From contig NW_027362772.1 of NCBI RefSeq assembly GCF_046119375.1, positions 14,136,001 through 14,200,000 on the forward strand: 64,000 nt of DNA. Reading direction: 5' to 3'. Positions 3,001-40,818 of the stretch are shown piece after piece. Position 1 is the stretch's first letter; each line of letters starts with the position of its first letter. The translations under genes and the position numbers were made by a program. Source of the stretch: Phyllobates terribilis. Its lineage: Eukaryota. A model generated the notes under the pieces. The model did no database searches. It had not been told where the DNA came from and saw only the letters and a list, made by a program, of their open reading frames with translations.

Positions 3001-6000
3001 CCTCTGCTGAGGATAGCCCATCAGTGTGGGTTCTTCTATCAAGACCTCAGTTGAGCATAGCCCTCAGAGTGGGGTCTCCTATCACATTGACGGTCTCCTA
3101 TGAAAATCTCAGCTGAGGATAGCCCATCAGTGTGAGTGACTTCTATCTTGGCCTCGGCTGAGAAAAGGTCACCAGTGTGGGGTCTCCTATCAAGACCTCA
3201 GCTGAGGATAGACCATTAGTGTGAGGATCTCGCATCAAGATCTCAGCTGAGGATAGCCCATAAGAGTGGGGTCTCATACTAAAGCCTCTTCTGAGAATAG
3301 GCCATCAGTGTGGGTTCTCCTATCAAGACCTCAGCTGAGGACAGTCCCTCAGTGTGGGGTTTCTTTCAAGATCTCAACTGAGGATAGCCCATCAATGTGA
3401 GAGCCTCCTCTCAAGATCTCAGCTGAAGATTGCATAGCAGTGTGGGGTCTCATGTGAAGACCTCAGCTGAGGATAGCCTGTCAGTGTGGTGTCTCCTATC
3501 AAGACCTCAGCTGAGGATAGCCTGTCAGTGTGAGGGTCTCCTATCATGACCTTAGATGAGGATAGGCCACCAGTGTGGGGTCTCCAATCAAGACCTCAAC
3601 TGAAGATAGTCCATCAATATGAGGCTCTCGTATCAAGATCTCAACTGAGGATAACCCATCAGTGTGAGGATCTCCTTTCATCACCTCAGCTGAGGATAGG
3701 CCATCAGTGTGGGTTCTCCTATCAAGACCTCAGCTGAGGATAGCCCATCAGTTTGAGGGTCTCATATCAAGACCTCAGCTAGGATAGCCCATCAGTGTGA
3801 GGGTCTCATATCAAGACCTCAGTTGAGGATAGCCCATCAGTATGAGGTCTCCTATCAAGACCTCAGATGAGGATAGGCCACCAGTGTGGGGTCTCCTATC
3901 TGGACCTCAGCTGAGGATAGCCCATCAGTTTGACGGTCTCCTATTAAGATCTCAGCTGAGGATAGTCCATCAGTGTGAGGGTTTTCTATCAATGCCTCGG
4001 CTGAGAAAAGTTCCCCAGTGTGGGGTCTTCTATCAATAACTCAGCTGAGAATAGCCCACCAATGTGAGGGTCTCCTATCAAGATCTTATCTGAGGATAGC
4101 CCATCAGTGTGGGGTCTCATACTAAAGCCTCTTCTGAGGATAGGCCATCATTGTGGGGTCTCCTATCAAGGCCTCAGCTGAGGATAGTCCATCAATTTGA
4201 GGGTCTCCAATCAAGATCTCAGCTGAGGACAGCCCATAAGTTTGGGGTTTTCTATCAAGACCTCAGCTGCTGATAGCCCATCAGTGTGGAGTCTCATACT
4301 GAAGTCTCTTCTGAGGATAGACCATCAGTGTCGGATCTCCTATCAAGGCCTCAGCTGAGGATAGCCTGTCAGTGTGAGTGTCTGCTATCAAGACCTCGGC
4401 TGAGGATAGCCCACCAATGTGGGGTCTCTTGTCAAGATCTCAGCTGAGGATAGAACATCAGTGTGTGGTCTCCGATCAAGACCTCAGCTGAGGATAGCCC
4501 ATCAGTTTTGGTCTCCTATGACGACTTCAGCTGAGGATAGCCTGTCAGTATGAGGGTCTCCTATCAAGACCTCAGGTGAGGATAGCCCATCAGTGTGGAA
4601 TCTCCTATCAAGACCTCAACTGAGGATAGCCCATCAATTTGGGGTCTCCTATCAAGCCCTCAGATAAAGATTACCTGTCAGTGTGAAGGTCTCCTATCAA
4701 GACCTCGGCTGAGGATAGCCCAACAGCGTGATGGTCTCCTATCAAGACCTCGGCTGAGGATAGGCCACCAGTGTGGGGTCTCTTGTCAAGATCTCAGCTG
4801 ATGATAGCCCATCAGTGTGGGGTGTCCTATCAAGACCTCAGCTGAGGAAAGCCCATCAGTGTGGGGTCTCCTATCAAGACCTCGGCTGAGGATAAGTCAT
4901 CAGTGTGAGGGTCTCCTATCAAGACATCGGCTGAGGATAAGTCATCAGTGTGAGGGTCTCCTATCAAGATCTCAGCTGAGGATAGTTCATCAGTGTGGGG
5001 TCTCATACTGAAGCCTCTTTTGAAGTTATGCCATCAGTTTGGGGTCTTCTATCAAGGCCTCAGCTGAGTATAGCCCATCAGTGTGGGGTCTCATATTAAG
5101 ATCTCAGCTGAGGATAGTTCATCAGTATGATGATCTCCTATCAAGACCTCTGCTAAGGATAGCCCATCAGTGTGGGTTCTTCTATCAAGACCTCAGCTGA
5201 GCATAGCCCATCAGTGAGGGGGCTCCTATCAAGACCTCAGCTGAGGATAGCCCATCACATTGACGGTTTCCTATCATAATCTCAGCTGAGGATAGCCCAT
5301 TAGTGTGAGTGACTACTATCAAGCCCTCGGCTGAGAAAAGGTCACCAATGTGAGGATCTCGCATCAAGATCTGAGCTGAGGAGAGCCCATCAGAGTGGGG
5401 TCTCATATTAAAGCCTCTTCTGAGAATAGGCCATCAGTGTGGGGTCTCCTATCAAGACCTCAGCTGAGGACAGTCCCTCAGTGTGGGGTCTCCTTTCAAG
5501 ACCTCAACTGAGGATAGCCCATCAGATTGAGGGTCTCCTCTAAAGATCTCAGCTGAGGATAGCCCATCAGAGTGAGGTCTCATACTAAAGCCTCTTCTGA
5601 GAATAAGCCATCAGTGTGAGGATCTCCTATCAAGACCTCAGCTGAGGATAACCCATCAGTATGAGGGTCTCCTAATAAAATCTCAGCTGAGGATAGCTCT
5701 TCAGTGTGGGGTCACACACTGAATCCTCTTCTGAGGATAGGCCATCAGTGTGGGTCTCCTATCAAGGCCTCAGCTGAGGATAGCCCATCAGTGTGAGGAT
5801 CTCCTTTCTAGAGCTCGGCTGTGGATAGCTCAACAGTGTAGCGTCTATCAAGACCTCAGCTGAGGATAGCCCATCAGTGTGGGGTCTCCTGTCAAGACCT
5901 AGGCTAAGGTTAGCCCATCAATGTGAGGGTCTCCTATCAAGACCTCGGCTGAGGATAGCCCAACAGTGTGATGGTCTCCTATCAATACCTCGGCAAAGGA

Positions 6001-12265: not shown

Positions 12266-15200
12266 ATGATGAAGCTTGTGGTTCTTGCTCTCTGCCTGGC
12301 TTACGGTAGGTCACAACTCCTCCAGCTTCGCTTTGCTCCCCAGTCCCCCACGACTGGCGCTCGCTGACCCCTCTTGTGTCTTCCAGCCTACAGCTGCGGC
12401 GTTCCGGCCGTGCAGCCCATCCTGTCCAGAGTGGTGAACGGCCATGATGTGCGAGAGCACAGCTGGCCATGGCAGGTGTGGACCGTAGAACTATAGTCAT
12501 GAGATGTCCCACGCCTCGTCCTGAAGACTCCTCTTACCAGGTTCTTTCCTTTCTCTAGATTTCCCTGCAGTACCAAGGCAGCAGCGGAGCCTGGGGCCAC
12601 ACCTGCGGCGGCACCCTGATTTCTGACCGCTGGGTCCTGACTGCCGCCCACTGTATCAGGTACAGGAAAAACAAGCAATTGAAGGCTGAACTGTATTGCG
12701 CTATGATCGATTGTCCGGTGTCATTTTTTATCGGAATTGCTTGTTTTAACACTTCGGTGACTACAGATTGCTAAGCGCTGTCCGGAGGTGTACAGGATAC
12801 AGGCGGGTGGTCCGCCTCTCTACAGGGCAATATTCTGACACCCTTATACCGGGACTAATAATAATCCCCCCCTTCCTCCAGCTCCGGCCGCGTCTACAGA
12901 GTCCTGGTTGGAAAGCACAACCTGAAGGAAGATGAGGAAGGATCCGCCGCCATCGGTACCGAGAAGATCTTTGTCCACGAGAAATTCAGCTCCTTCCTGA
13001 TCATCGCGTAAGTAACATCTCGGGGCCCCACCATGTTCAGGGGCCAACCAGGACTGCACTAATGCTCCACGTCTTATCTGAATCTCAGTAACGACATCGC
13101 CATCATCAAGCTGGCCGAGCCCGCCCCGCTCAGCGACACTGTGCAGCCCGCCTGCATTCCTGCTGACGGCGCCATCCTGGCACACGACTTCCCCTGCTAT
13201 GTCACCGGGTGGGGACGTCTGTACAGTAAGTAATGACATCAATATGCCTCACATATACCATCACGTGTCCACTAGTGTCCATTACTGATACTTTGTTCTG
13301 CAGCCAATGGACCCATCGCTGACAATCTCCAGCAGGCTCTGCTTCCCGTGGTCGAACACGCCGTCTGCAGCAGGTCCGACTGGTGGAGCTTCCAAGTAAA
13401 CAATAACATGGTCTGCGCCGGAGGGGACGGAATCGTGTCTGGATGCAACGTACGAAAATATCAGTTACATTACTGAGCCTGTATTATACTCCAGAGCTGC
13501 ACTCACTATTCTGCTGGTGCAGTCACTATGTACATACATTACATTACTGATCCTGAGTTACATCCTGTATTATACTCCAGAGCTGCACTCACTATTCTGC
13601 TGGTGCAGTCACTATGTACATACATTACATTACTGATCCTGAGTTACATCCTGTATTATACTCCAGAGCTGCACTCACTATTCTACTGGTGCAGTCACTG
13701 TGTACATACATTACGTTACTGATCCTGAGTTACATCCTGTATTATACTCCAGAGCTGCACTCACTATTCTGCTGGTGCAGTCACTGTGTACATACATTAC
13801 ATTACTGATCCTGAGTTACATCCTGTATTATACTCCAGAGCTGCACTCACTATTCTGCTGGTGCAGTCACTGTGTACATACATTACATTACTGATCCTGA
13901 GTTACATCCTGTATCATACTCCAGAGCTGCACTCACTATTCTGCTGGTGCAGTTACTGTGTACATACATTACATTACTGATCCTGAGTTACCTCCTGTAT
14001 TATACTCCAGAGCTGCACTCACTATTTTGCTGGTGCAGTCACTATGTACATACATTACATTACTGATCCTGAGTTACATCCTGTATTATACTCCAGAGCT
14101 GCACTCACTATTCTACTGGTGCAGTCACTGTGTACATACATTACATTACTGATCCTGAGTTACATCCTGTATTATACTCCAGAGCTGCACTCACTATTCT
14201 GCTGGTGCAGTCACTATGTACATACATTACATTACTGATCCTGAGTTACATCCTGTATTATACTCCAGAGCTGCACTTACTATTCTGCTGGTGCAGTCAT
14301 TGTGCACATACATTACATTACTGATCCTGAGTTACCTCCTGTATTATACTCCAGAGCTGCACTCACTATTCTGCTGGTGCAGTCACTGTGTACACACATT
14401 ACATTACTGATCCTGAGTTACATCCTGTATTATACTCCAGAGCTGCACTCACTATTCTGCTGGTGCAGTCACTGTGTACATACATTACATTACTGATCCT
14501 GAGTTACCTCCTGTATTATACTCCAGAGCTGCACTCACTATTCTGCTGGTGCAGTCCCTGTGTACATACATTACATTACTGATCCTGAGTTACATCCTGT
14601 ATTATACTCCAGAGCTGCACTCACTATTCTGCTGGTGCAGTCACTGTGTACATACATTACATTACTGATCCTGAGTTACATCCTGTATTATACTCCAGAG
14701 CTGCACTCACTATTCTGCTGGTGCAGTCACTGTGTACATACATTACATTACTGATCCTGAGTTACATCCTGTATTATACTCCAGAGCTGCACTCACTATT
14801 CTGCTGGTGCAGTCACTGTGTACATACATTACATTACTGATCCTGAGTTACATCCTGTATTATACTCCAGAGCTGCACTCACTATTCTGCTGGTGCAGTC
14901 ACTGTGTACATACATTACATTACTGATCCTGAGTTACACCCTGTATTATACTCCAGAGCTGCACTCACTATTCTGCTGGTGCAGTCACTGTGTACATACA
15001 TTACATTACTGATCCTGAGTTACATGCTGTATTATACTCCAGAGCTGCACTCACTATTCTGCTGGTGCAGTCACTGTGTACATACATTACATTACTGATC
15101 CTGAGTTACCTCCTGTATTATACTCCAGAGCTGCACTCACTATTCTGCTGGTGCAGTCATTGTGTACATACATTACATTACTGATCCTGAGTTACATCTT

Positions 15201-15687
15201 GTATTATACTCCAGAGCTGCACTCACTATTCTTCTTACATTAGGCATTGTAGAGTCATCTGTACTTCAGTAAAAGCTAAATTTTTATTCTTCACCAGCTT
15301 GCTGATGGTTTCCATTAACAAGCAGCTGATTTGTGTCTTCATCATATAATGAGCACTGCTCTTTCACAGGGAGACTCCGGCGGACCCCTGAACTGTCAGG
15401 CTCCTAATGGATCCTGGGAAGTCCACGGCATCGTCAGCTTTGGCTCCGGAATCAGCTGCAACTATGAGAAGAAGCCGACCGTCTTCACCCGCGTCTCCGC
15501 CTTTCTGGACTGGATGAACGATGTGAGTGCCGGGGGGGAAGCGGCGCCATCTCTGGGGGGTTTGGGTAACGCTTACTTGTCAGTAGGGCGTTTCTCGTCA
15601 GACTCCGCCCTAGTTGTATCTGCAGGACATTGTTGTTACATTGTTTCTCTTGTGATTGTTTATTTACAGAAAATCGTCAACAACTAA
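12266..15687 (+). CDS. CTRC: Chymotrypsin-C (caldecrin)-like pancreatic serine protease preproenzyme, 8 exons, 269 aa
   Basis: Exons 12266-12305, 12387-12475, 12559-12659, 12882-13007, 13089-13225, 13304-13449, 15370-15522, 15670-15687; all GT-AG; total 810 nt, in frame. Signal peptide [14 protein letters not shown], propeptide Cys, R|VVNG activation site, triad TAAHC / NDIA / GDSGGP. CTRC-like motifs ISLQY, EDEEGS, TNGPIAD and [14 protein letters not shown] (compared from memory). The orthology label is inference. Confidence 0.9.
13465..15231. repeat. 86-bp tandem satellite in CTRC intron 6 (about 20 units)
   Basis: Unit TACATTACTGATCCTGAGTTACATCCTGTATTATACTCCAGAGCTGCACTCACTATTCTGCTGGTGCAGTCACTGTGTACATACAT; near-identical ORFs recur every 86 bp. 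Confidence 0.97.
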
Positions 15688-25588: not shown

Positions 25589-26917
25589 TGTAGCGCCCCG
25601 AGGGCTCGGCTGCTACAGGGGTATTGCACCTCTGCCAGAGGTGTGATATTCCACTCCCGGGTAAGGATGGAGTATGGACCAGGGCTCAGGTAGCTGCACA
25701 CAGCACACACACCCCATTTCCGGGGTGACAGCTCAACAGTGCTCCCATTAGACAGTAATGCAGGCACGACAGACCATGTCCCTGGCTGGAGTGGGGAGGG
25801 GGAGGAAAACCCAGTGATGTAGGAGCAGGAGGGGACGGTTCCTGAGCGTAGGTAGGAGCTCATTGGTTGCTGGTCACCTGGGCTCATGTTCTAGAGGGAA
25901 GTATAAAAGGTGGGCACCATCTTAGAGTCAGTGCAGTCTGTGGAGTCTGTTCAGTCTGTTCGGTGGAGAACGCAGAGGGGAAGACAGGGGGCCCAGGCTC
26001 TGTAGGAGCTCTGCTCAGAGGCAGGCCTAGAGAAAAGGCCGGGGCCTGAGAGGAGAAGGAACAGAGGAGAAGAGAAGGAACAGAGGAGAAGAGAAGGAAC
26101 AGAGGAGACGAGAAGGAACAGGAAAGGGAAAGAAGTGGCCGAGAAACAGAAGGGCTCAGGAACAAGAAGGTGGAAGGGACCCTAAGAGCCCATGAGAATA
26201 CCAGGGGGAAGGGTCAGGCAGATTAAGGGTGCCGGATCCCAAGTTGGTGGAGGAGAAACTACCCTCAGCCAAAGACCGGAGGTCGTGATCATTTATTGGT
26301 GCGACACCTCACCAAACCTGCTAGGAAGGCACCATACAGGACAGCGGGGAACGGGGCCCACGTTTACCCGCGCAGATCCGCGGCAGCTGGACAGAAGTTG
26401 GTCACTGGTGGGGAAGGCCAGAGAAAGGATAGAAGGGGGTCCTGTGCCATATTCCTGAACTGCCTGGGGGTTGACCGAGCCCCTCACCTGGCGGACACAG
26501 CACGGCTCGGGCAGTCACTACCGGTACCGAAGTGGCTTGGAGTATACGAACAGTGAGTAAAAGACCCTGGACTGCAACATGTTGTCTTTGTGCTTTTTAC
26601 TTCGCCAGCACTAACGGTACTGGGACGCCCCGCACTACAATCCCCACCATCCACGCTCACTGCCCTGGGGCTGCACTCTTCCCGTGGGGAGTCACACTAC
26701 CTCAGCTGCACGCACCATCAGCCTCAGAGGACTGCCTTGCAGCGGCGGTTCATAATAGCCGCAATCCACGGGTGGCGTAGTCGGACATTACCTAAAACAT
26801 ATAAAAGACTGCCACTGGTCTGACCACCCTGAGCCACGGGACCAGGTCGCCACTACTACTCCCAGCATTGCCCTGAAGCCCGGTCCCGAGTGCCCCACGG
26901 CCCAAGGGGGCGAGTCA
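25589..26917 (+). mobile_element. Solo LTR (1329 bp) inserted in the Tc1 transposase
   Basis: Termini TGTAGCGCCCC...GGGGCGAGTCA; 4-bp TSD GATG at 25585-25588 and 26918-26921; TATAAAA at 25902; AGTAAA near 26556. Removing it restores the Tc1 reading frame. Confidence 0.85.
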
Positions 26918-27765
26918 GATGGAGCGAGACATGATGTCCCATATGTGCTCAATCGGATTCAGGTCTGGGGAACGGGCGGGCCAGTCCATAGCTTCAATGC
27001 ATTCATCTTGCAGGAACTGCTGACACACTCCAGCCACATGAGGTCTGGCATTGTCCTGCATTAGGAGGAACCCAGGGCCAACCGCACCAGCATATGGGCT
27101 CACAAGGGGTCTGAGGATCTCATCTCGGTACCTAATGGCAGTCAGGCTACCTCTGGCGAGCACATGGAGGGCTGTGCGGCCCTCCAAAGAAATGCCACCC
27201 CACACCATTACTGACCCACTGCCAAACCGGTCATGCTGAAGGATGTTGCAGGCAGCAGATCGCTCTCCACGGTGTCTCCAGACTCTGTCACGTCTGTCAC
27301 ATGTGCTCAGTGTGAACCTGCTTTCATATGTGAAGAGCACAGGGCGCCAGTCGCGACTTTGCCAATCCTGGTGTTCTGTGGCAAATGCCAAGCGTCCTGC
27401 ACGGTGTTGCGCTGTGAGCACAACCCTCATCTGTGGACGTCGGACCCTCATACCACCTGCATGCAGTCGGTTTCTAACCGTTTGTGCAGACACATGCACA
27501 TTTATGGCCTGCTGGAGGTCATTTTGCAGGGCTCTGGCAGTGCTCCTCCTGTTCCTCCTTGCACAAAGGTGGAGGTAGCGGTCCTGCTGCTGGGTTGTTG
27601 CCCTCCTACGGCCCCCTCCACATCTCCTGGTGTACTGGCCTGTCTCCTGGTAGCGCCTCCAGCCTCTGGACACTACGCTGACAGACACAGCAAACCTTCT
27701 TGCCACAGCTCGCATTGATGTGCCATCCTGGATGAGCTGCACTACCTGAGCAACTTCTGTGGGTT
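26918..27765 (-). pseudogene. Tc1 transposase central segment (HTH and DD34E)
   Basis: ORF 26915-27742: [10 protein letters not shown] (first catalytic D changed to Y), [18 protein letters not shown]. Confidence 0.92.
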
Positions 27766-27836
27766 AGTAAATAATCTACAACATGGAAAAATGACTTATT
27801 AATCCACATAATAGGGACTACCGAAGTAATATATAA

Positions 27837-29011
27837 TTAAAGACCAAAAGAGCACAAAAAACTTCGAAAAACGTCCCAGATTATGGAAGTACAAACTCTT
27901 TATTGAAGGAAAATTGGATGGAAACAATACGGATCACTCAGAGACAAAAAATTAAAAAACAATGGAAGAGCAAGTAGACGAGGACCAAATTGAATATATT
28001 GCCCCATGAAAATCAATTATATATAAATACAATGAGGGCACTCACAAAACAAATCATGAAATGGTGGCTCACATATCTATCCCATTGGATAGGCCCCACA
28101 ATGGGAGCAAGTTAAATACACTGCCCCATAAGTATCAGCTATATAGAAGTACAATAAGGTCACTAACAAAAACAATCATGAGGAAGTGGCTAACGTGTCT
28201 GTCACATTGAATAAACCCCACGATGGGAGACTGTGTATAACATGACGAGATCCCATACTTACAACAGCTGTAATGAAGACACAGCGCCTCGCTCCTGCTC
28301 TGCCCTACGCGCGTTTCGGCTTAGCTTGCCTTCGTCATGGGGTGGTGAGCAGAGGGGGTGAGAGGGTTTAAAAGGCCAAGACGGCCAATGATATGTGAGG
28401 GTGTGTGCGTCGTCAGCCAATCAATGCGGGGAGGGCGTGGCGCAACGCATGTCCATCACCACCCTACCGCCACATCCACGGCAACCGCGTCATGCGATCC
28501 CCGACATCACGGTCACGTGGGTAACACGTGACCGTGCGTCAAAGACCACATAATGATACGGCCAGCGAGGAAGCGACGGCAGGCAGCGAGGACATGCGTA
28601 CCGCCTGCCCCACATCTATGGACACAACAAGTAACCAATAATAATGAGAAAAAGGCGTTCCTATCTGGTAGCCTGAAATAACTCTCTTGCTATGCTATGT
28701 TATGAAAGGCACGATAAAAAGTAAAAATACAATGTAATTAGCTGGAGAGGGATAGACCTTACATAGCAATATTAAATCAATACTGGACACAAATGGTGTA
28801 ATTATAACAAAGAATTACATCATAGCCCCAAGGTGGATCACAAAAATAAATCAGTCAACTGATATCCATCAGTTCCATAGATCGCCTATGTGTAAAAATC
28901 TAGACATCTACAATATAGCCCAATTATTATAATTAGGCAGAATTTTACACATCAGGCAGCAAGTTTATTATAAAGAGAAAATGTCCATTGTGTCTGAAAA
29001 GGCTAAAAAAT
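27837..29011 (-). repeat. Left inverted pseudo-LTR of the PLE
   Basis: Reverse complement of 32989-34162; 8 mismatches counted in the outer ~320 bp. Confidence 0.93.
28303..28341 (-). ncRNA. Minimal type I hammerhead ribozyme with a core mutation (C3A)
   Basis: Minus strand reads CCC ATGACGA A GGC AAGCTAA GCC GAAA CGCGC GTA GGG. Identical to the right copy except C>A at 28338. Confidence 0.7.
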
Positions 29012-29037
29012 TATCCGGTTGTGGCAACTATCTAGAG

Positions 29038-31026
29038 CAGGGGTCTCAAACACGCGGCCCGCGGGCACAGACCCCTTGATGATCCCGACCTGGTCCAGGA
29101 GGAGCCGCCGACAGCAGCGCTGCATTGCCGCACAGAGACCGTCTCCCAGCACTGCATTTCCAATGTCAGCTGCCGGCCAATCAGAGGCCAGCAGCTGATA
29201 TCTGCGTGTCGGCGCAGCGAGTATGACGTCATTGCCATACGCAGATGTCAGCTGCTGGCCTCTGATTGGCCGGCGGCTGGCATTGGAAATGCTGTGCTGG
29301 GAAACAGTCTCTGTGCGGCAATGCAGCGCTGCTATCGGCGGCTCCTCCTGGACCAGGTCGGGATCGTCAAGGGGTCGGACTCTGTGGTGCCTGCGGGCCA
29401 CATCTGCAGGAAGGACGCCGAGGGAACGGAGGACAGGTGAGAATCATCTTTTTTTTTCTATTTTATGTGTGTGAAGAACAGGGGGCACATAGCCACAAGA
29501 GGGGACCTGGATGGGGCACATAGCCACAAGATGGGGACCTGGATGGGGCACATAGCCACAAGAGGGGACCTGGATGGGGCACATAGCCACAAGATGGGGA
29601 CCTGGATGGGGCACATAGCCACAAGATGGGGACCTGGATGGGGCACATAGCCTCAAGATGGGGACCTGGATGGGGAACATAGCCACAAGATGGGGATCTG
29701 GATGGGGCACATAGCCACAAGAGGGGACCTGGATGGGGCACATAGCCACAAGATGGGGATCTGGATGGGGCAGAATGGGATCTGGATGGGGCACATAGCC
29801 ACAAGAGGGGACCTGGATGGGGCACATAGCCACAAGATGGGGATCTGGATGGGGCACATAGCCACAAGAGGGGGACCTGGATGGGGCACATAGCCACAAG
29901 ATGGGGACCTGGATGGGGCACATAGCCACAAGATGGGGACCTGGATGGGGCACATAGCCCCAAGATGGGGACCTGGATGGGGCACATAGCCACAAGATGG
30001 GGACCTGGATGGGGCACATAGCCACAAGATGGGGATCTGGATGGGGCACATAGCCACAAGATGGGGATCTGGATGGGGCACATAGCCACAAGAGGGGACC
30101 TGGATGGGGCACATAGCCACAAGATGGGGATCTGGATGGGGCACATAGCCACAAGAGGGGACCTGGATGGGGCACATAGCCACAAGATGGGGATCTGGAT
30201 GGGGCACATAGCCACAAGATGGGGACCTGGATGAGGCACATTAGTACAAGATGGGGGCCAGGATGGGGAACATTGCCACAAGATGGGGACCTGGATGGGG
30301 CACATAGCCACAAGATGGGGACCTGGATGGGGAACATTGCCACAGGATGGGGACCTGGATGGGACACATAGCCACAAGATGGGGATCTGGATGGGGCAAA
30401 TAGCCACAGGATGGGGACCTGGATGGGGTACATAGCCACAAGATGGGGACCTGGGTGGGGCACATAGCCACAAGATGGGGATGTGGATGGGGCAAATAGC
30501 CACAGGATGGGGACCTGGATGGGGTACATAGCCACAAGATGGAGACCTGGATGGGGCACATAGCCACAAGATGGAGACCTGGATGGGGCACATAGCCACA
30601 AGATGGGGACCTGGATGAGGCACATTAGTACAAGATGGGGACTTGGATGGGGAACATTACTACAAGATGTTTGCCATTATTACTATATGATGCTAATTGT
30701 AAGACAATATTACTGAATGTGGCCAATTGGGGGAAACAAAATTGTAAAAATCAAAAAAATAAAAATAAAGCATGAAAAAATATTGGCCACTAAAAATGCT
30801 GTTTTATATGTAAACTAAAGTAAACACAAAAAAGTGCACATTTATTATCGTCACATCCATAACGACCCAAGCCATAAAAAAATAAACACGGAAAAAATGA
30901 TCAAAAGGTGTAGTCAAAAAAAAAATGGTATCACTAAAAATGTCACATTGAACAAAGAATGCGGCCCCCCAAATTCAAATTTTTTCCATGTGCGGCCCAT
31001 ATACCCAGCCGAGTTTGAGACCCCTG
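29038..31026. mobile_element. Non-autonomous hAT (Charlie-type) element inserted in the PLE RT
   Basis: TIRs CAGGGGTCTCAAAC / GTTTGAGACCCCTG; perfect 8-bp TSD ATCTAGAG at 29030-29037 and 31027-31034. Confidence 0.93.
29482..30662. repeat. 31-32 bp minisatellite inside the hAT element
   Basis: Unit GGGCACATAGCCACAAGATGGGGACCTGGATG; tagccacaag at 29490, 29521 and 29553. Confidence 0.95.
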
Positions 31027-32988
31027 ATCTAGAGAATACTGGTAAATTCATTGACACCAAATTACAGCCACTTGTCGAATGCCTCCCATCCTTCATTAAA
31101 GATACGGGGGATTTCCTTAGGAAAATTGATGAACTCTACATAGGGCTGGATACATTATTAGTCACTTGTGACGTCGAGTCGCTCTATACTAATATGCGTC
31201 ATGTTGACGGGGTTGGAGCTACTCGCTTTTTTCTGCAATCAGCTAACCATTCAAATAATATGATCTCTTTCATCTTGGATCTGTTGGAATTTAGCCTTTC
31301 TCATAACTTTTTTGTGTTCAAAGGGTCGTATTTCCTGCAGCTCCAGGGAACAGCAATGGAGGCACCTTTCGCCCCGTCCTACGCCAACCTGTTCCTGGGG
31401 CTGTGGGAAAGAGACCTTTTCCAGTCAGATCGGTTGTCATCGATGGACCGCGTCCTCTTCTGGACGCGGTACATTGATGACATCTTTCTGATCTGTCAGG
31501 GCTCCCCAGAAACTTTGAAATCCTTCATGTGGGAACAATTATAACATTCATTTGACCTATCAGGCCAACTCCTCAAGCATTGAGTTCCTTGATGTAAGAA
31601 TCATGCGGGATGAGAGAGATACGCTCCAGAGTACGGTTTATCGCAAACCATCCGCGGTAAATTCTCTCTTACATGCATCATCTGCACATCCCAGACATAT
31701 GATAAACGCTGTCCCCATAGGGCAATTCTTACGATTAAGACGACTATGTTCATCTGAAACTGAATTCCTGACACAGTCACAAAATCTTGTGACTAGATTC
31801 AGGGAAAGAGGTTATAGTCACCGCGCTTTAAAGAGGGCCTTCCATCGTGCTAAAAATACTAAGCGCCATGATTCCCTATACACGGTTAAACCAGTTAAGG
31901 ACAGCAACATCATACGTTTCATTACTACATTAATTCGGGGGCATCAAAAGTCCGTGATAGCCATACTAAATCATGGCCAATTCTGTTGGCAGATCCTGTC
32001 TTGTCCAATTATTTACCACCTAAACCACAAATCACCTTTAGGAAGGCCAAAAACCTTCGTGATCATCTCACGAGAAGTCATTATCAATATAATATCCCTC
32101 CTAATTTTTTGAGCAGGTCTACACCAGTTAATGGCTGTTCACCATGTGGTAAATGTTTAGCCTGTCCAAATGTTGAACACACTGATTCATTTGTAGACTC
32201 AAAAGGATCTAAGACCTACTCTATTACTAAATCAATTACCTGTGCTTCCAAAGGAGTAGTGTATTATGCAACATGACCTTGTCCAAAAATTTACATTGGA
32301 CTTACTACTAGACAACTGAAAATTAGAGTACGTGAACACGTACTGGGTGGCAGAGACTGACATCTCTTTATTAAAAACATTGCCGAAACACTTTAAACTG
32401 CATCATGGATGCGACGCATCAAAATTTAAAGTTCGCGGCATAGATATGATCACCAATAATATTAGGGGGGGTAATGTGAGTCAAAGGTTGGCCCAAAAGG
32501 AGAGCCGATGGATCTGGGTACTTAAGACCCTACATCCATCAGGCCTAAATGAGAATATTAGCTATGTGCCATTGCTCTGATCGCTTTTCTACCATTTTAA
32601 ATACGATTTTATGTGGTGTTCTGGGTTTCTTTTTCTAATATTTGTTTTTCCGTTTTAGTTTTCTTCGGCTGAGGTAACCTTTTCCTATTCTTCATCGACA
32701 TTATCTGAAGATATACCTACGGTGGAGTGTGGATTTCATCATACATGCATGTTGATGGTTACATATATATGTACTGGAGTTGTATTTTTCTACATATATG
32801 TGTATAGGCTTTTCTGCCATATGATGCTATGTGACTCTTGTCCCCTGGGATGTGACTTTAATTACTTTAATTACATCTATATTTGATCTATTTATATATT
32901 TTTTTATCCATCAGTTCCATTTATTTTCTATTGATTTTACTATATTAATGATCAATGTCCTTGTGTTGCAGTATAATTTAACATGCTC

Positions 32989-34162
32989 ATTTTTTAGCCT
33001 TTTCAGACACAATGGAGATTTTCTCTTTATAATAAACTTGCTGCCTGATGTGTTAAATTCTGCCTAATTATAATAATGGGGCTATATTGTAGATGTCTAG
33101 ATTTTTACACATAGGCGATCTATGGAACTGATGGATATCAGTTGACTGATTTATTTTTGTGATCCACCTTGGGGCTATGATGTAATTCTTTGTTATAATT
33201 ACACCATTTGTGTCCAGTATTGATTTAATATTGCTATGTAAGGTCTATCCCTCTCCAGCTAATTACATTGTATTTTTACTTTTTATCGTGCCTTTCATAA
33301 CATAGCATAGCAAGAGAGTTATTTCAGGCTACCAGATAGGAACGCCTTTTTCTCATTATTATTGGTTACTTGTTGTGTCCATAGATGTGGGGCGGGTGGT
33401 ACGCATGTCCTCGCTGCCTGCCGTCGCTTCCTCGCTGACCGTATCTTTATGTGGTCTTTGACGCGCGGTCACGTGTTACCCACGTGACCGTGATGTCGGG
33501 GATCGCATGACGCGGTTGCCGTGGATGCGGCGGTAGGGCGGTGATGGACATGCGTCGCGCCACGCCCTCCCCGCATTGATTGGCTGACGACGCACACACC
33601 CTCACATATCATTGGCCGTCTTGGCCTTTTAAACCCTCTCACCCCCTCTGCTCACCACCCCCTGACGAAGGCAAGCTAAGCCGAAACGCGCGTAGGGCAG
33701 AGCAGGAGCGAGGCGCTGTGTCTTCATTACAGCTGTTGTAAGTTTGGGATCTCGTCATATTATACACAGTCTCCCATCGTGGGGTTTATTCAATGTGACA
33801 GACACGTTAGCCACTTCCTCATGATTGTTTTTGTTAGTGACCTTATTGTACTTCTATATAACTGATACTTATGGGGCAGTGTATTTAACTTTCTCCCATT
33901 GTGGGGCCTATCCAATGGGATAGATATGTGAGCCACCATTTCATGATTTGTTTTGTGAGTGCCCTCATTGTATTTATATATAATTGATTTTCATGGGGCA
34001 ATATATTCAATTTTGTCCTCGTCTCCTTGTTCTTCCATTGTTTTTAATTTTTTGTCTCTGAGTGATCCATATTGTTTCCATCCAATTTTCCTTCAATAAA
34101 GAGTTTGCACTTCCATAATCTGGGACGTTTTTCAAAGTTTTTTGTGCTCTTTTGGTCTTTAA
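32989..34162 (+). repeat. Right pseudo-LTR of the PLE
   Basis: Follows the ORF stop (32580) and a unique 3' segment; contains a CpG-rich promoter-like region and a hammerhead. Confidence 0.93.
33659..33697 (+). ncRNA. Minimal type I hammerhead ribozyme with intact core
   Basis: CCC-CTGACGA-A-GGC(AAGCTAA)GCC-GAAA-CGCGC-GTA-GGG: stem I CCC/GGG, core CUGACGA, stem II GGC/GCC, GAAA, palindrome ACGCGCGT (33686-33693). Predicted cleavage after A33694. Confidence 0.85.
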
Positions 34163-34510
34163 CTTCTGTGGGTTGTAGAGTCTGTCTCATGCTACCACGA
34201 GTGTGAAAGCACAACCAACATTCAAAAGTGACCAAAACATCAGCCAGAAAGCATTGGTACTGAGATGTGGTCTGTGGTCCCCACCTGCAGAACCACTCCT
34301 TTATTGAGGGGTTCTTGATAATTGCCAATAATTTCCATCTATTGTCTGTTCCATTTGCACAACAGCATGTGACATTGATTGTCAATCAGTGTTGCTTCCT
34401 AAGTGGACAGTTTGATTTCACAGAAGTTTGATTTACTTGGAGTTATAGACATCATAATACAAATCAGTAAATAAATAGGGAGGATTTTAGCAGATATAAA
34501 TACCCTGAAG

Positions 34511-34548: not shown

Positions 34549-35602
34549 TTATACACCGGAGGCAAGGGGGCAGGATGTTATATATTGGGGTGAGGTAGCT
34601 GGAGGTTATACATAGGAAGGAGGGTGGACCCGGGGCCGGAGGTTATACACTAGGGGTGAGGGGGCTGAATGTTATATACTGGGGAGATGGGGGACCAGGG
34701 GCTGAAGGTTACATACCAGGGGTGAGGGGGCTGGATGTTATATACTGGGGGGGAGGGGACCAGAGTTCATATAGCCGAGGGCAATGGAACTGAAGGAAAA
34801 AGCGAGATCCCGTGATTGAGGCGGTGTCCAGTACTTTTCTCCCTGCATTATATGAGGACGAGCAGATGCTTCATCATCATCACAATGAATATTCAGGAAT
34901 CGACATTTCAGGGCAGGTGACCCCCATGATATCTGCGCTCCTGGTCCTCAATGCTGAGTGACGGGTGGAGATGGAGCTCGAGTTCAGCTTTAATCAGTGA
35001 TGAATTGTCACACACATTTCCATATAATTTCTGCGCTGCCATCATCTACCATAGCAGAAACAGAAGAGCTTGCAATCTATCCACAAATATCACACAGTTG
35101 GTAAATGGGATAGTTGTGAGCTCCGTATTAGTGAGGCAGCTCAATTTCAGGCAGCTGCTGCAAAAGCCAAATCACAAGTTATACTGCAACTTAAATATAA
35201 GGCACAGTGAGGACACCCAGGGTGGGCTGCGGGGTCAGTGCAGCCCTGAGGAAGCGTTTAGGGTCCAGGATACCCTCTGTCTCCCCCAGACATCAGTGAA
35301 TGAGATATTCAATTATGACGTATCCTTCATCTATGGTCGAATATTGTAGTCACCGCAATGTAAATCCCCTGCGCCCCTGTGTCCTCTGTAGGACACCATT
35401 ACCAGGTTGACCTTAGCCTCCCTTCTAGTATCTATCCGATGGTAATAAAAGCGGTGGATATTTTCAGAGCTTAACGTCCACTTGGAAACTTATTATAACT
35501 CAAGGTCTGTTATAATCTGGTCTGTGAATATTCTGGATGGTGGGAACGACCCCAGATACAGGGCGCAGGTCGGCTGTGCAAACACGAGATAATACACCTC
35601 CA

Positions 35603-35610
35603 TATATATA
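35603..35610 (+). promoter_or_regulatory. TATA box of the CELA2A-like gene
   Basis: TATATATA starting 41 bp upstream of the ATG at 35644. Confidence 0.65.
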
Positions 35611-35643
35611 CGAGCTGCAAGACTGAACGTATCACTCTCCAAG

Positions 35644-38600
35644 ATGATTCCCCTGGTACTAGCAGTGCTCCTGGTGGCTGGGGGTAAGTAGTGTCAGTGC
35701 CCCTAGTGGCTGAGGATGAGCAGTGTCAGTGTTCCTGGTGGCTGTGGATGAGCAGTGTCAGTGTTCCTAGTGGCTGAGGATGAGGAGTGTCAGTGGTCCT
35801 GGTGGCTGTGGATGAGCAGTGTCAGTGTTCCTGGTGGCAGGGGGTAAGTAGTGTCAGTGCCCCTAGTGGCTGAGGATGAGGAGTGTCAGTGGTCCTGGTG
35901 GCTGGGGGTGAGCAGTGTCAGTGTTCCTGGTGGCTGAGGATGAGGAGTGTCAGTGATCCTGGTTGCTGTGGATGGGCAGTGTCAGTGTTCCTAGTGGCTG
36001 TGGATGAGCAGTGTCAGTGTTCCTGGTGGCAGGGGGTAAGTAGTGTCAGTGTTCCTGGTGGCTGGGGGTGAGCAGTGTCAGTGCCCCTAGTGGCTGAGGA
36101 TGAGGAGTGTTAGTGTTCCTGGTGGCTGTGGATGAGCAATGTCAGTGTTCCTGGTGGCTGGGGGTGAGCAGTGTCAGTGTTCCTGGTGGTTGGGGGTGAG
36201 CAGTGTCAGTGTTCCTGGTGGTTGGGGGTGAGCAGTGTCAGTGTTCCTGGTGGCTGGGAGTGAGCAGTGTCAGTGTTCCTGGTGGCTGGGGGTGAGCAGC
36301 GTCAGTGTTCCTGGTGGCTGGGGGTGAGCAGTGTCAGTGTTCCTGGTGGCTGGGGATGAGCAGTGTTAGTGTTCCTGGTGGCTGTGGATGAGTAGTGTCA
36401 GTGTTCCTGGTGGCTGTGGATGAGCAGTGTCAGTGTTCCTGGTGGCAGGGGGTAAGTAGTGTCAGTGTTCCTGGTGGCTGTGGATGAGCAGTGTCAGTGT
36501 TCCTGGTGGCTGTGGATGGCAGTATCAGTGTTCCTGGTGGCTGTGGATGAGCAGTGTCAGTGTTCCTGGTGGCTGTGGATGAGCAGTGTCAGTGTTCCTG
36601 GTGGCTGTGGATGAGCAGTATCAGTGTTACTGGTGGCAGGGAGTAAGTAGTGTCAGTGTTCCTGGTGGCTGTGGATGAGCAGTGTCAGTGTTCCTGGTGG
36701 CTGTGGATGAGCAGTGTCAGTGTTCCTGGTGGCTGTGGATGAGCAGTGTCAGTGTTCCTGGTGGCAGGGGGTAAGTAGTGTCAGTGTTCCTGGTGGCTGT
36801 GGATGAGCAGTGTCAGTGTTCCTGGTGGCTGGGGGTGAGCAGTGTCAGTGTTCCTGGTGGCTGGGGGTGAACAGTGTCAATGTTCCTGGTGGCTGGGGGT
36901 GAGCAGTGTCAATGTTCCTGGTGGCTGGGAGTGAGCAGTGTCAGTGTTCCTGGTGGCTGGGGGTGAGCAGTGTCAGTGTTCCTGGTGGCTGTGGATGAGC
37001 AGTGTCAGTGTTCCTGGTGGCTGGGGGTGAGCAGTGTCAGTGTTCCTGGTGGCTGGGGGTGAACAGTGTCAATGTTCCTGGTGGCTGGGGGTGAGCAGTG
37101 TCAATGTTCCTGGTGGCTGGGAGTGAGCAGTGTCAGTGTTCCTGGTGGCTGGGGGTGAGCAGTGTCAGTGTTCCTGGTGGCTGGGGGTGAGCAGTGTCAG
37201 TGTTACTGGTGGTTGGGGGTGAGCAGTGTCAGTGTTCCTGGTGGCTGGGGGTGAGCAGTGTCAATGTTCCTGGTGGCTGGGAGTGAGCAGTGTCAGTGTT
37301 CCTGGTGGCTGGGGGTGAGCAGTGTCAGTGTTCCTGGTGGCTGGGGGTGAGCAGTGTCAGTGTTCCTGGTGGCTGGGGGTGAGCAGTGTCAGTGTTCCTG
37401 GTGGCTGGGGGTGAGCAGTGTCAGTGTTCCTGGTGGCTGGGAGTGAGCAGTGTCAGTGTTCCTGGTGGCTGGGGGTGAGCAGTGTCAGTGTTCCTGGTGG
37501 CTGTGGATGAGCAGTGTCAGTGTTCCTGGTGGCTGGGGGTGAGCAGTGTCAGTGTTCCTGGTGGCTGGGAGTGAGCAGTGTCAGTGTTCCTGGTGGCTGG
37601 GGGTGAGCAGTGTCAGTGTTCCTGGTGGCTGGGGGTGAGCAGTGTCAGTGTTCCTGGTGGTTGGGGGTGAGCAGTGTCAGTGTTCCTGGTGGCTGGGGGT
37701 GAGCAGTGTCAGTGTTCCTGGTGGCTGGGGGTGAGCAGTGTCAGTGTTCCTGGTGGCTGGGGGTGAGCAGTGTCAGTGTTCCTGGTGGCTGGGGGTGAGC
37801 AGTGTCAGTGTTCCTGGTGGCTGGGGGTGAGCAGTGTCAGTGTTCCTGGTGGCTGGGAGTGAGCAGTGTCAGTGTTCCTGGTGGCTGGGGGTGAGCAGTG
37901 TCAGTGTTCCTGGTGGCTGGGGGTGAGCAGTGTCAGTGTTCCTGGTGGCTGGGGGTGAGCAGTGTCAGTGTTCCTGGTGGCTGGGGGTGAGCAGTGTCAG
38001 TGTTCCTGGTGGCTGGGGGTGAGCAGTGTCAGTGTTCCTGGTGGCTGGGAGTGAGCAGTGTCAGTGTTCCTGGTGGCTGGGGGTGAGCAGTGTCAGTGTT
38101 CCTGGTGGCTGTGGATGAGCAGTGTCAGTGTTCCTGGTGGCTGGGGGTGAGCAGTGTCAGTGTTCCTGGTGGCTGGGAGTGAGCAGTGTCAGTGTTCCTG
38201 GTGGCTGGGGGTGAGCAGTGTCAGTGTTCCTGGTGGCTGGGGGTGAGCAGTGTCAATGTTCCTGGTGGCTGGGGGTGAGCAGTGTCAGTGTTCCTGGTGG
38301 CAGGGGGTAAGTAGTGGTAGTGCCCCTAGTGGCTTGGGTTAGCAGTGTAAAACACGTCTATACATTCTACTTACTGGGTGTGAGTCGGGTTTTATAAGGG
38401 TAATGAAGGGCACGTTGTTGGTGCTGATCTATATTTGTCTATGGCCGCCCTTGTTTCTGTGAATTCATCTTTTCCTCTTGCCTTGAGCAGCGTCCGGCTG
38501 CGGAGTCTCCACTATTAAGCCCTCGCTGTCACGAGTGGTGAACGGCGATGAGGTTGTGCCCCACAGCTGGCCCTGGCAGGTGAGCGAGCGCCGTCCACAC

Positions 38601-40818
38601 ATATCTAATGGAGGTCACTGTCCTTAATGTGGAGTCTCTTCAGTCACTGGAAGACTGGGAATTACCAACTATCCAGTAATTATTGGAATTTCTACCCGCT
38701 CTGCAGGTGTCGCTCCAGTACATCTATGGTGGATACTGGTATCACACGTGCGGGGCAAGCCTCATCTCATCCACCTGGGTGCTGACCGCTGCTCACTGCA
38801 TCAGGTAAGAAGGAACCATGAAGTATTTGGTTTGGGGTCTATACTGGGAGGGGATTTCTGAATTTTGCCCCAATTTATGTGACTTTCTTAAAGAAGTATA
38901 TTGTTTTCAATCTCTTTTTTTCTTTCAGTTCCTCCAACACCTACCGCGTCATGTTGGGCAAACACAACTTTCGGGTATCTGAGGCCGGTCAGAAGACCAT
39001 CAGTGTTGTCAAACTGATCAACCATTCAAAATGGAACCCAAACAGACTCTCCGCAGGGTAACGGTTTCACGAAATCCATCCGTATGAGTTGAAATATCAT
39101 GTTCTATGGGTGGAAATGAGTCCTCGTGTGATTTGTATCGCTAGCATAGGGGCAACAAGGCCCAATTTGGATCACTGACCAAATTCATAAAAGGTGTGAA
39201 CTTTTTATTTGGCTTCTCATTGGCCTAAGTCAAGTTCACAATCAACCAAGGGAAAAGGAAACCAGGTTGAGAGCTTGGCAGGAGTCCTCTGTCCTACAAG
39301 GAAGACTCATGGTATTTGTACTATTTTCCTCCAGATACGACATTTCTCTGTTGAAGCTGGAACAGCCTGTAGAATTTAGTGAAACAATCCAGCCTGCATG
39401 CCTGCCCCCTGCTGGTTACATCCTTAATCACAATTTAAGCTGCTATGTCACTGGATGGGGTAACCTCCAAAGTAAGTGACATGTAGCGTTTTTAAAACTG
39501 CATCCATTTATTAATGTGTGTTGGGGCATGTGATGGCCCCATGGCGGTTCCATAGGATTGCATAAAAAAAGTATCTGGGAACCCTGAAATTATATAGTTT
39601 TATAATGAGACTTAAGTTTTTTTTTATTGTTTAGTATCACAAAGAATTTAGGAATTTTCTTGATGAGTGGACACAGGGGTGTAATGTGAAGGCTCTATGC
39701 CTTAATGCAAAATATGTAACATGTCTAGCTACCATGTGTTATTCAAAATACTAATGTCTTCTTATATGTAAGAACGCCCTTGGGCTACAGGTTCTGGGAG
39801 CTACTGTTCCCTGTCTACTCTTCATAGTTATCTCCATGAGAGGCATCATGTCTGACCCCATGGCGGTTCCACATGAAGAGATAGTTCTATGTTTAGTTGT
39901 CACATTGAATCATCTGCTTCACTTTTATGATTCATATTTTTTACAGCTAACGGTCCTTCTCCTGATGCATTGCAACAAGGTGTCCTGCTGGTTGTGGACC
40001 ACGCCACCTGCTCTCAATCTGACTGGTGGGGTAGATCCGTGCAGACTAACATGATTTGCGCCGGTGGAGATGGAATCATTTCGAGCTGCTACGTAATTTA
40101 CTTTTTTGTATCTCATTACTACAGCTACCCATAGTACTGGAATCTTATTAATGTCGTTGGTGACATTACGCATCCACAGCTGCATTCAAAATTCTGCTGG
40201 ACAAGTTATAATAATGAAGATTAATAATACACTTGTGGCAACTTGACATCAGGCCTCCCACAACATACCGAAGCAAGAGAATGACGATGATGTGGCAGCT
40301 CCAGCATCCTGAGTGCTAACAAAAATCCAGCAGAATTATGAATGCAGCTCTGGATGTGCCTTAAGTCATTACAAGTAACAGAACACAATAAGCGATCTAC
40401 AACTTATCAGGACACGTTGGGTGTTGTAGTGCTGCAGCAACTGGAGAGTCACAGGTTGAAGACCATTGACCTATCACGTGAATCTGGTCTTTTAGGGGGA
40501 TTCTGGTGGACCCCTCAACTGCTTGAATGACCAGGGTGCCTGGGAAGTCCACGGTGTGGTCAGTTTTGGTTCCTCTCTCGGATGTAACTACTACAAGAAG
40601 CCGTCCGTCTTCACACGCGTCTCCGAATTTAACAGCTGGATCAGTTCGGTAAGTGTCACAGGAGGGGCATCGCCCCAAAGCAACCAATCACAACGCCTCC
40701 TTCAACCCGTACGCAGTCAGCGATAATCTGATTGGTTGCATCCGGTCTACATTGATTGTTGTTACAATGTATTAACCCCTCGTTCTCTGTTTGGCATCAG
40801 ACAATCGCAGCGAACTAA
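35644..40818 (+). CDS. CELA2A: Chymotrypsin-like elastase 2 (CELA2A-like) preproenzyme, 8 exons, 269 aa
   Basis: Exons 35644-35683, 38491-38579, 38707-38804, 38929-39057, 39335-39471, 39947-40092, 40496-40648, 40801-40818; total 810 nt. R|VVNG, TAAHC, YDISL, GDSGGP; [21 protein letters not shown] (G216/S226) is CELA2-like. Intron phases match the CTRC-like gene. The family label is inference; 2A versus 2B cannot be resolved. Confidence 0.9.
35668..38348. repeat. 32-bp minisatellite filling CELA2A intron 1 (about 84 units)
   Basis: Unit AGTGTCAGTGTTCCTGGTGGCTGGGGGTGAGC; period 32 (37321 and 37353); begins inside exon 1. Confidence 0.96.

Follow-up and report, generated by a model that had tools for sequence, protein, structure and literature searches.

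Upstream of an elastase-like gene in a 64-kb window of Phyllobates terribilis DNA (the window being the whole stretch analysed, 64,000 nucleotides), 39 nucleotides at 33659-33697 resemble a hammerhead ribozyme. We asked whether the resemblance is more than accidental, to which element the motif belongs, and whether it may still cleave RNA at this locus. The features of the motif itself are as follows.

33659-33697, plus strand: type I hammerhead motif with an intact core (from the sequence, Rfam RF00163, a descriptor search, and the spike and break points in contig depth).

33647-33706, plus strand: extended motif including distal helix I (from the RNAfold minimum free energy (MFE) structure and structure evaluation).

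28303-28341, minus strand: second, inverted hammerhead copy (from a 1-mismatch search; 16.6 bits in Rfam).

All conserved positions of the type I core (C3 U4 G5 A6 N7 G8 A9, G12 A13 A14, A15.1-U16.1, and H17) were present in the sequence and in the Rfam alignment. The strand from C3 to A9 reads CUGACGA at 33662-33668, and GAAA at 33683-33686 provides G12-A14 and A15.1. U16.1 is located at 33693 and H17 is A17 at 33694; the scissile bond is predicted at 33694/33695. Proximal helix I consists of 3 bp (CCC at 33659-61 with GGG at 33695-97). Helix II is likewise 3 bp long (GGC at 33670-72 with GCC at 33680-82) and carries a 7-nt loop, AAGCUAA; its G10.1-C11.1 pair is G33670-C33682, and A33669 is an extra unpaired base between A9 and G10.1. 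For helix III, 33686-33693 forms a perfect 8-nt palindrome, ACGCGCGU, identical letter for letter to helix III of the Rfam Hammerhead_1 consensus. The sequence agrees in these respects with the original prediction, which had described a hammerhead with a full core, a CCC/GGG stem I, a 3-bp stem II, an extra A, and a palindrome.

Other parts of that description need adjustment. Stem I had been proposed to continue as CUCUG/CAGAG; the extension was recovered but in a different register, since the MFE fold picks a longer distal helix I, 33647-53 with 33700-06, composed of six Watson-Crick pairs and one G-U pair and separated from the proximal part by a 5x2 internal loop. Both helix I (3 bp plus the distal 6-7 bp) and the 3-bp helix II form in the MFE fold, and for helix III there are only two forms, 2 bp with a tetraloop within one molecule or 8 bp between the palindromes of two molecules. 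The claim that stem III is unable to close in one molecule was correct in treating the palindrome as a dimer interface, but the helix can also be drawn as 2 bp closed by a GCGC tetraloop, which is the 'canonical metazoan type I' layout. The label 'minimal' suits helix II, whose bulged nucleotide is of the minimal hammerhead (min-HHR) type, but not helix III, which is of the canonical short-palindromic type. RF00163 (Hammerhead_1) was the sole family matching the site in E-value mode, at 33656-33700 with 19.9 bits, but this score is 14 bits short of the RF00163 gathering threshold of 34, and at gathering thresholds no Rfam match was obtained in the whole 64-kb window. The E-value was 0.019 on the 241 nt searched and 5 on the whole window. 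By itself the Rfam score is not significant, and the claim of a hammerhead could not rest on the covariance model alone; the RF00163 model is not built from short PLE-type motifs, PLE denoting Penelope-like elements.

The specificity of the motif was assessed by pattern searches. Loose core patterns gave approximately four chance occurrences per window. A full descriptor, composed after the site had been seen, matched this site alone in the window. It combined the core, an optional extra nucleotide, the G10.1-C11.1 pair, H17, and a palindromic helix III, and helices I and II each had to have 3 bp or more. The same descriptor gave 0 matches in 300 Markov-shuffled 64-kb sequences searched on both strands.

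The surroundings of the motif were analyzed to identify the element that carries it, and the following features were obtained.

27752-27765: left target-site duplication, 14 bp, AACTTCTGTGGGTT (direct repeat).

27766-29020, minus strand: left arm, which repeats the right-arm 3' region in inverted and 5'-truncated form (from the inverted-repeat alignment).

31029-32577, plus strand: broken PLE coding remnant, comprising the reverse transcriptase (RT) from motif A/B/C onward, a CxxCxxCxxC linker, and a putative GIY-YIG-type endonuclease (EN) (from ORF translations, phmmer, tblastn, and a profile).

32980-34161, plus strand: right arm, which is the pLTR-type 3' terminal part of the PLE copy and is non-coding (from the inverted repeat and the insertion boundary).

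34162-34175: right target-site duplication, 14 bp, AACTTCTGTGGGTT (direct repeat).

ORF pieces on the plus strand between 30834 and 32580 contain RT motifs including YIDD, and pieces on the same strand of this region also carry a CxxCxxCxxC stretch followed by an endonuclease-like end, GVVYYAT...SRWIWVLKTLHPSGLNE. When a 236-aa piece was compared by phmmer with 1.84 billion representatives, 10,893 relatives were found, the best at 65% identity. The best relatives were anuran 'uncharacterized proteins' from Anomaloglossus, Ranitomeya, Dendrobates, Rhinoderma, Engystomops, and Hyperolius. tblastn aligned 31029-32577 with the best frog homologue over its residues 498-1024, at 51-66% identity and with frame breaks near 31527-33, 31927-43, 32274-76, and 32349-58. 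Because this map begins at residue ~498 and contains frame breaks, the coding copy was judged to be 5'-truncated and broken. The truncation also accounts for the absence of the DKG motif, which was visible solely in the full-length homologues.

Domain searches gave weaker signals. The Pfam family RVT_1 matched weakly here (E = 0.028) and at 2e-5 to 6e-8 in the homologues; the Pfam search of the ORF pieces between the arms returned no GIY-YIG match and nothing beyond this weak RVT_1. In the consensus of a 30-protein alignment, the RT part contains ADKGG, LVTxDVxSLYT, GTAMG..APSYANLFMG, and RYIDDIF, and the C-terminal part contains the CxxCxxC linker followed by VIYxLxCxC..YVGxTxRxL..R..EH ... 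E..WI..L....P.GLN. A phmmer search of the best homologue against PDB yielded nothing useful. The top PDB match of a profile of the 30 homologues was T4 endonuclease II (chain 2wsh_A), in the endonuclease region and weak (E = 0.024); this protein, a GIY-YIG nuclease, points weakly toward the expected endonuclease type. A Cys-rich linker between RT and EN is a trait of Neptune/Nematis elements (PMC8557442); therefore, the element was tentatively called Neptune-like, and not Poseidon.

An inverted copy of the right arm (32980-34161) occupies 27837-29020; the two align over 1,175 nt with 98.04% identity, 22 mismatches, and one 1-nt gap. The outer end of the left arm holds 71 extra nt (27766-27836), which we read as a PLE 'tail'. 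The composite insertion thus delimited extends over 27766-34161, with its boundary at 34161/34162, and is flanked by the AACTTCTGTGGGTT direct repeats. From 34162 onward the sequence belongs to a very high-copy Tc1/mariner-like repeat, and a Tc1/mariner transposase remnant is found at 26915-27742. According to the consensus of loose-end contigs, the sequence ending at 27751 directly adjoins 34162 in most genomic copies of this host repeat. The target duplication together with these uninterrupted copies indicates that the PLE inserted into the very high-copy Tc1/mariner-like repeat. Published PLE insertions are 5'-truncated, have a truncated copy next to them in inverse orientation and a 'tail', and carry hammerheads in their terminal repeats (PMC8557442). 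The features of a complex PLE insertion, namely 5' truncation, the inverted truncated copy, the tail, and the target duplication, were all found here. The element would have entered the Tc1/mariner-like repeat as the usual composite, that is, a 5'-truncated sense copy joined to an inverted and more truncated copy with a 14-bp duplication. An assembly artefact as the source of the inverted repeat was ruled out by the 2% difference between the arms and by the clean 14-bp target duplication inside a high-copy repeat. Two 32-bp minisatellites in the region, at 29482-30669 and from 35528 onward, showed no mutual similarity.

Within this insertion, the hammerhead lies in the right arm on the plus strand, 465 nt before the insertion end and 1,082 nt downstream of the end of the EN remnant (32577). 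The motif had been assigned to a PLE terminal repeat, and this location was confirmed: it occupies the non-coding 3' repeated arm, on the strand of the RT/EN remnant. Between the motif and the insertion end, 465 nt further on, neither a credible tblastn match to coding sequence nor an open frame was found.

The inverted arm carries the second copy of the motif. Its 39 nt differ from the right motif at a single position, where C3 (opposite 33662) is changed to A to give AUGACGA, and the C3-G8 core pair is lost; in their stems the two copies do not differ. In Anolis Poseidon, C3G or G8C abolishes cleavage (PMC11167929). Since the same pair is lost here, the left copy is presumably inactive, by analogy with these mutants. 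Both arms would have carried the motif at insertion, and over ~2% divergence the right motif would have stayed unchanged while the left one lost C3. Over a 45-nt motif, one difference between the arms was observed and 0.9 was expected from the 2% divergence; the arm sequences give no indication that the motif has been under selection here after the insertion.

We then compared the locus with other genomic copies of the same frog. Logan contigs of this species from four runs, none of them on record as RNA, were aligned to 32900-34250 at 80% likeness. Over 33636-33727 the summed contig depth was 1,682-1,791 in run X1 and 969-1,096 in run X5, both DNA runs and from two studies, against 67-82 and 122-149, respectively, in the neighbouring bins. 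The depth therefore rises about 8- to 25-fold over the motif, although contig depth is not equal to copy number. The similarity of the contigs ends at 33658 before the motif and at 33697 behind it, with low consensus agreement in the flanks (0.5-0.6). Indels of 1-3 nt were concentrated at 33673-78, which corresponds to loop 2, and among the substitutions listed for these contigs no linked changes in helices I and II were seen. From the divergence of the contigs at 33658 and 33697 and the depth spike, it follows that the 40-nt motif is common to many otherwise unalignable repeats; the sequence of distal helix I is not conserved among these copies. Judging from the contig alignments, conservation limited to the motif, with a hairpin loop of variable length, has the look of a conserved structured module. 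The depth spike may derive partly from other PLE families or from hammerhead-bearing repeats such as retrozymes, and not from this PLE family.

Taken together, the stretch is very probably the hammerhead module of a Penelope-like retrotransposon, probably of the Neptune type, which a dead copy has kept letter-perfect in its non-coding 3' terminal part. As an example, it is ordinary: one more anuran case of a published class, the hammerheads in PLE terminal repeats. PLE hammerheads have been described in fish, coelacanth, Xenopus, turtles, and snakes (PMC4209133).

The motif shares with the PLE min-HHRs of Cervera and De la Pena 2014 (PMC4209133) the type I topology, the terminal-repeat location on the ORF strand, the unpaired nucleotide between A9 and G10.1, and the G10.1-C11.1 pair. 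A further likeness to that class is the palindromic 15.x-16.x, implying a dimeric active form. The class forms large, heterogeneous families of single copies dispersed over a genome; in this frog the same is suggested by the contig depth, which is not a copy count, and by the heterogeneous flanks. Unlike many PLE min-HHRs, whose helix II is often 6-8 bp in published families, e.g. in Schistosoma, helix II here has 3 bp and a 7-nt loop; proximal helix I (3 bp) and helix II (3 bp) are both shorter than in most published PLE min-HHRs. Helix III also departs from the bare A-U plus one pair of min-HHRs, being an 8-nt palindrome as in D. virilis and canonical types.

With the canonical metazoan type I hammerheads (newt satellite 2, Schistosoma Sm-alpha, and non-LTR retrozymes; RF00163; PMC7229834; bioRxiv 10.64898/2026.07.22.740005), the motif has in common the same core and the consensus helix III ACGCGCGU. 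In contrast to the canonical retrozyme type I hammerheads, it lies outside any ~330-nt tandem unit, and unlike canonical type I it has a helix II of 3 bp plus a bulge rather than 4 bp and displays no recognisable loop1-loop2 tertiary contact pattern. Retrozymes have been reported as related to PLE terminal repeats (PMC7229834; bioRxiv 10.64898/2026.07.22.740005). Poseidon of Anolis carolinensis (PAc, PMC11167929) likewise carries a vertebrate PLE hammerhead; however, the ORF start codon is located inside the PAc hammerhead, whereas no coding sequence was found in the 465 nt 3' of the present motif.

As to how such a module may work, helices I and II of a PLE hammerhead would, according to the literature, fold around the CUGANGA/GAAA core while helix III is too short within one molecule. 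Metazoan PLE hammerheads, whose helix III is too short for closure in one molecule, have been read as dimeric ('double') hammerheads (PMC4209133). The palindrome would pair with that of a second copy to form the double hammerhead, in which each core would cut after H17. In vitro, cleavage by PLE hammerheads is weak and takes place in dimers or after helix III has been lengthened artificially (PMC4209133), and in Anolis the cut needs the protein of the element but is dispensable for insertion in vitro (PMC11167929). Activity is described as weak when unaided and as promoted by the element's protein. No read ends were detectable at the cut site in Anolis RNA-seq (PMC11167929), and the role of PLE hammerheads is still called unclear (PMC8557442).

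The folding energies of the present motif were calculated for one and two molecules. The monomeric hammerhead fold was estimated at -12.9 to -13.8 kcal/mol, and the monomer MFE structure, in which core bases are mispaired, at -18.7 kcal/mol. A nested double hammerhead, in which both helix I and the 8-bp helix III form between the two molecules, reached -43.9 kcal/mol, as compared with -37.4 kcal/mol for two separate monomers. The dimer MFE was -50.5 kcal/mol, and the intermolecular 8-bp helix III was retained in it. By these calculations, double-hammerhead pairing is thermodynamically feasible.

At this locus, the window contains no second sense copy in cis: the other copy is inverted and mutated in the core. 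A transcript that crosses the two arms would enclose the motif in a duplex of ~1.2 kb. Because there is no sense copy in cis, because of this duplex, and because the ORF is broken, cleavage would be possible only in trans with RNA of other copies. The motif here is most likely a silent, neutrally drifting relic.

Two tandem chymotrypsin/elastase-like genes are encoded on the plus strand of the window, with TAAHC/GDSGGP motifs at 12640/15370 in the first and at 38785/40496 in the second. The second gene has a TATA-like run at 35603 and an ATG at 35645, followed 14 protein letters on by a GT donor. The original prediction had placed the motif about 1.9 kb upstream of the start of this gene on the same strand, and this holds: the predicted cut site is 1,950 nt upstream of the ATG at 35645. 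Any effect of the hammerhead on the elastase-like gene is speculation, and cutting of read-through transcripts by the motif at this locus is unlikely.

Among the alternatives to a silent relic, the one that survives best is that the motif is active here, yet it appears very improbable. Transcripts starting in the terminal repeat of the right arm, or reading through to the elastase-like gene, would be cut after A33694 with a dimer partner supplied in trans by other PLE or retrozyme copies, which would yield processed RNAs or trim upstream read-through. The intact core, the thermodynamic feasibility of the double-hammerhead pairing, and the 40-nt motif common to many other genomic copies are compatible with such activity, as is the position on the strand of the elastase-like gene, 1,950 nt upstream of it. 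CCAAT-like motifs (33579, 33612) and a TATA-like motif (33628) were also noted just 5' of the hammerhead, by eye only, and are likewise compatible. Further, a 501-nt contig, from a run that is guessed to be RNA, reaches from 33646-53 to 33753 across a related copy of the motif. This contig is uncut, however, and comes from another copy; it is evidence neither for expression of this locus nor for cleavage. In the unique parts of the locus, no RNA contig matched at 99% or more, no run being on record as RNA. The divergence of the arms without sign of constraint argues against activity as well, as do the published min-HHRs, whose cleavage is weak and depends on dimers or on protein, and the Anolis reads, none of which end at the site.

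A related proposal, somewhat less probable again, is that solo hammerheads are not inert: if ACGCGCGU were common to hundreds of dispersed PLE and retrozyme copies, their transcripts would form double hammerheads in trans, so that even a single-copy motif would be cut in vivo and would shape read-through or repeat-promoted transcripts into the elastase-like gene. Least probable of all is that the resemblance is accidental, or that a decayed motif looks like a hammerhead and never functioned as a ribozyme; a GC-rich palindrome could stand beside CUGANGA/GAAA by coincidence. The sub-threshold Rfam score with its whole-window E-value of 5, the very short stems, and the roughly four loose core patterns per window would fit this reading, but it is opposed by the absence of full-descriptor matches in the 300 shuffles, by a location and strand as expected of a PLE hammerhead, by the joint presence of the class-specific extra nucleotide, the G10.1-C11.1 pair, and the palindrome, and by the conservation of the 40-nt block across otherwise unalignable copies.

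A PLE module of this kind has little significance alone and adds one well-documented anuran example. Its use may lie in the natural pair that the insertion provides, since the intact motif and its C3-to-A twin constitute a ready wild-type and mutant control. The pair could show whether PLE hammerheads with such short helices act as dimers in cleavage or depend on the protein of the element.

Sequences combining the core with the same helix III were also collected from metagenomes as a control. These matches were mostly due to chance and lay in environmental contigs; both stems were present in only 4 of the 119, a count from which one contig labelled human-gut metagenome was excluded.

The Penelope-like element (PLE) composite (27766-34161) occupies the intergenic space between two serine-protease genes. 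The features of the region, of which the three sequence elements upstream of the hammerhead motif (33468-33491; 33579 and 33612; 33628) were recognized by eye, were as follows.

12640-15370 and 35645-40496 (+): tandem pair of genes for elastase/chymotrypsin-like serine proteases
29070-29376: 138-nt inverted repeat, 94% complementary, with a 31-nt spacer, just inside the left arm
29482-30669: 32-bp minisatellite of about 37 units, 91% match, between the inverted arms and the reverse transcriptase remnant
33468-33491: inverted repeat containing CACGTG
33579 and 33612: two CCAAT-like ATTGG boxes, just 5' of the hammerhead motif
33628: TTTTAAA run, just 5' of the hammerhead motif
33770-34018: 122-bp unit in two tandem copies, 77% match, inside the terminal repeat and mirrored in the left arm

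Contigs assembled from sequencing runs of the same frog were compared with 32900-34250 at 80% likeness. Their summed depth, which is not a copy number, also peaked at 33406-33543, reaching up to 2,373-4,180. Considering this peak together with the ATTGG boxes, the TTTTAAA run, and the CACGTG inverted repeat, the hammerhead motif (33659-33697) may be located where a conserved promoter-like module of the terminal repeat begins. Within the 122-bp tandem region, some genomic contigs from two DNA runs skipped 152 nt, joining 33722 to 33875. Therefore, copies of the terminal repeat with a single 122-bp unit exist.

The PLE composite splits a Tc1/mariner-like element (HTH_Tnp_Tc3_2 + DDE_3 remnant), which was found at 26915-27751 and from 34162 onward. 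Summed contig depths to the right of 34161 were 6e5-1.5e6 in the DNA runs, indicating that this host repeat ranks among the genome's most abundant.

On the minus strand of the minisatellite at 29482-30669, long fake ORFs arise from the repeat, and comparison of this minisatellite with the 32-bp minisatellite at about 35528-38300 indicated that their sequences are unrelated. The inverted repeat just inside the left arm gave a sub-threshold Rfam mir-210 match (24.7 bits vs 50), for which the likeliest explanation is a hairpin formed by chance.

In X10, a putative RNA run, A>G was the most frequent difference across 32900-34250 (24 of 68 places); it accounted for 18 of 276 places in the DNA run X1. 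The pattern in X10 could reflect A-to-I editing of duplex RNA that derives from repeats, or just different copies.

Scanning for the hammerhead core with the same helix III yielded convincing hammerheads in two metagenome contigs, L052 (2453-2482, +) and L048 (145-177, +), both with ACGCGCGU as helix III, as in the window motif. In the L052 hammerhead, A9 is followed by an extra A of the PLE type, and helix II is 3 bp long; the L048 hammerhead is of the canonical form with a 4-bp helix II. Both contigs probably represent eukaryotic DNA present in samples from the environment.
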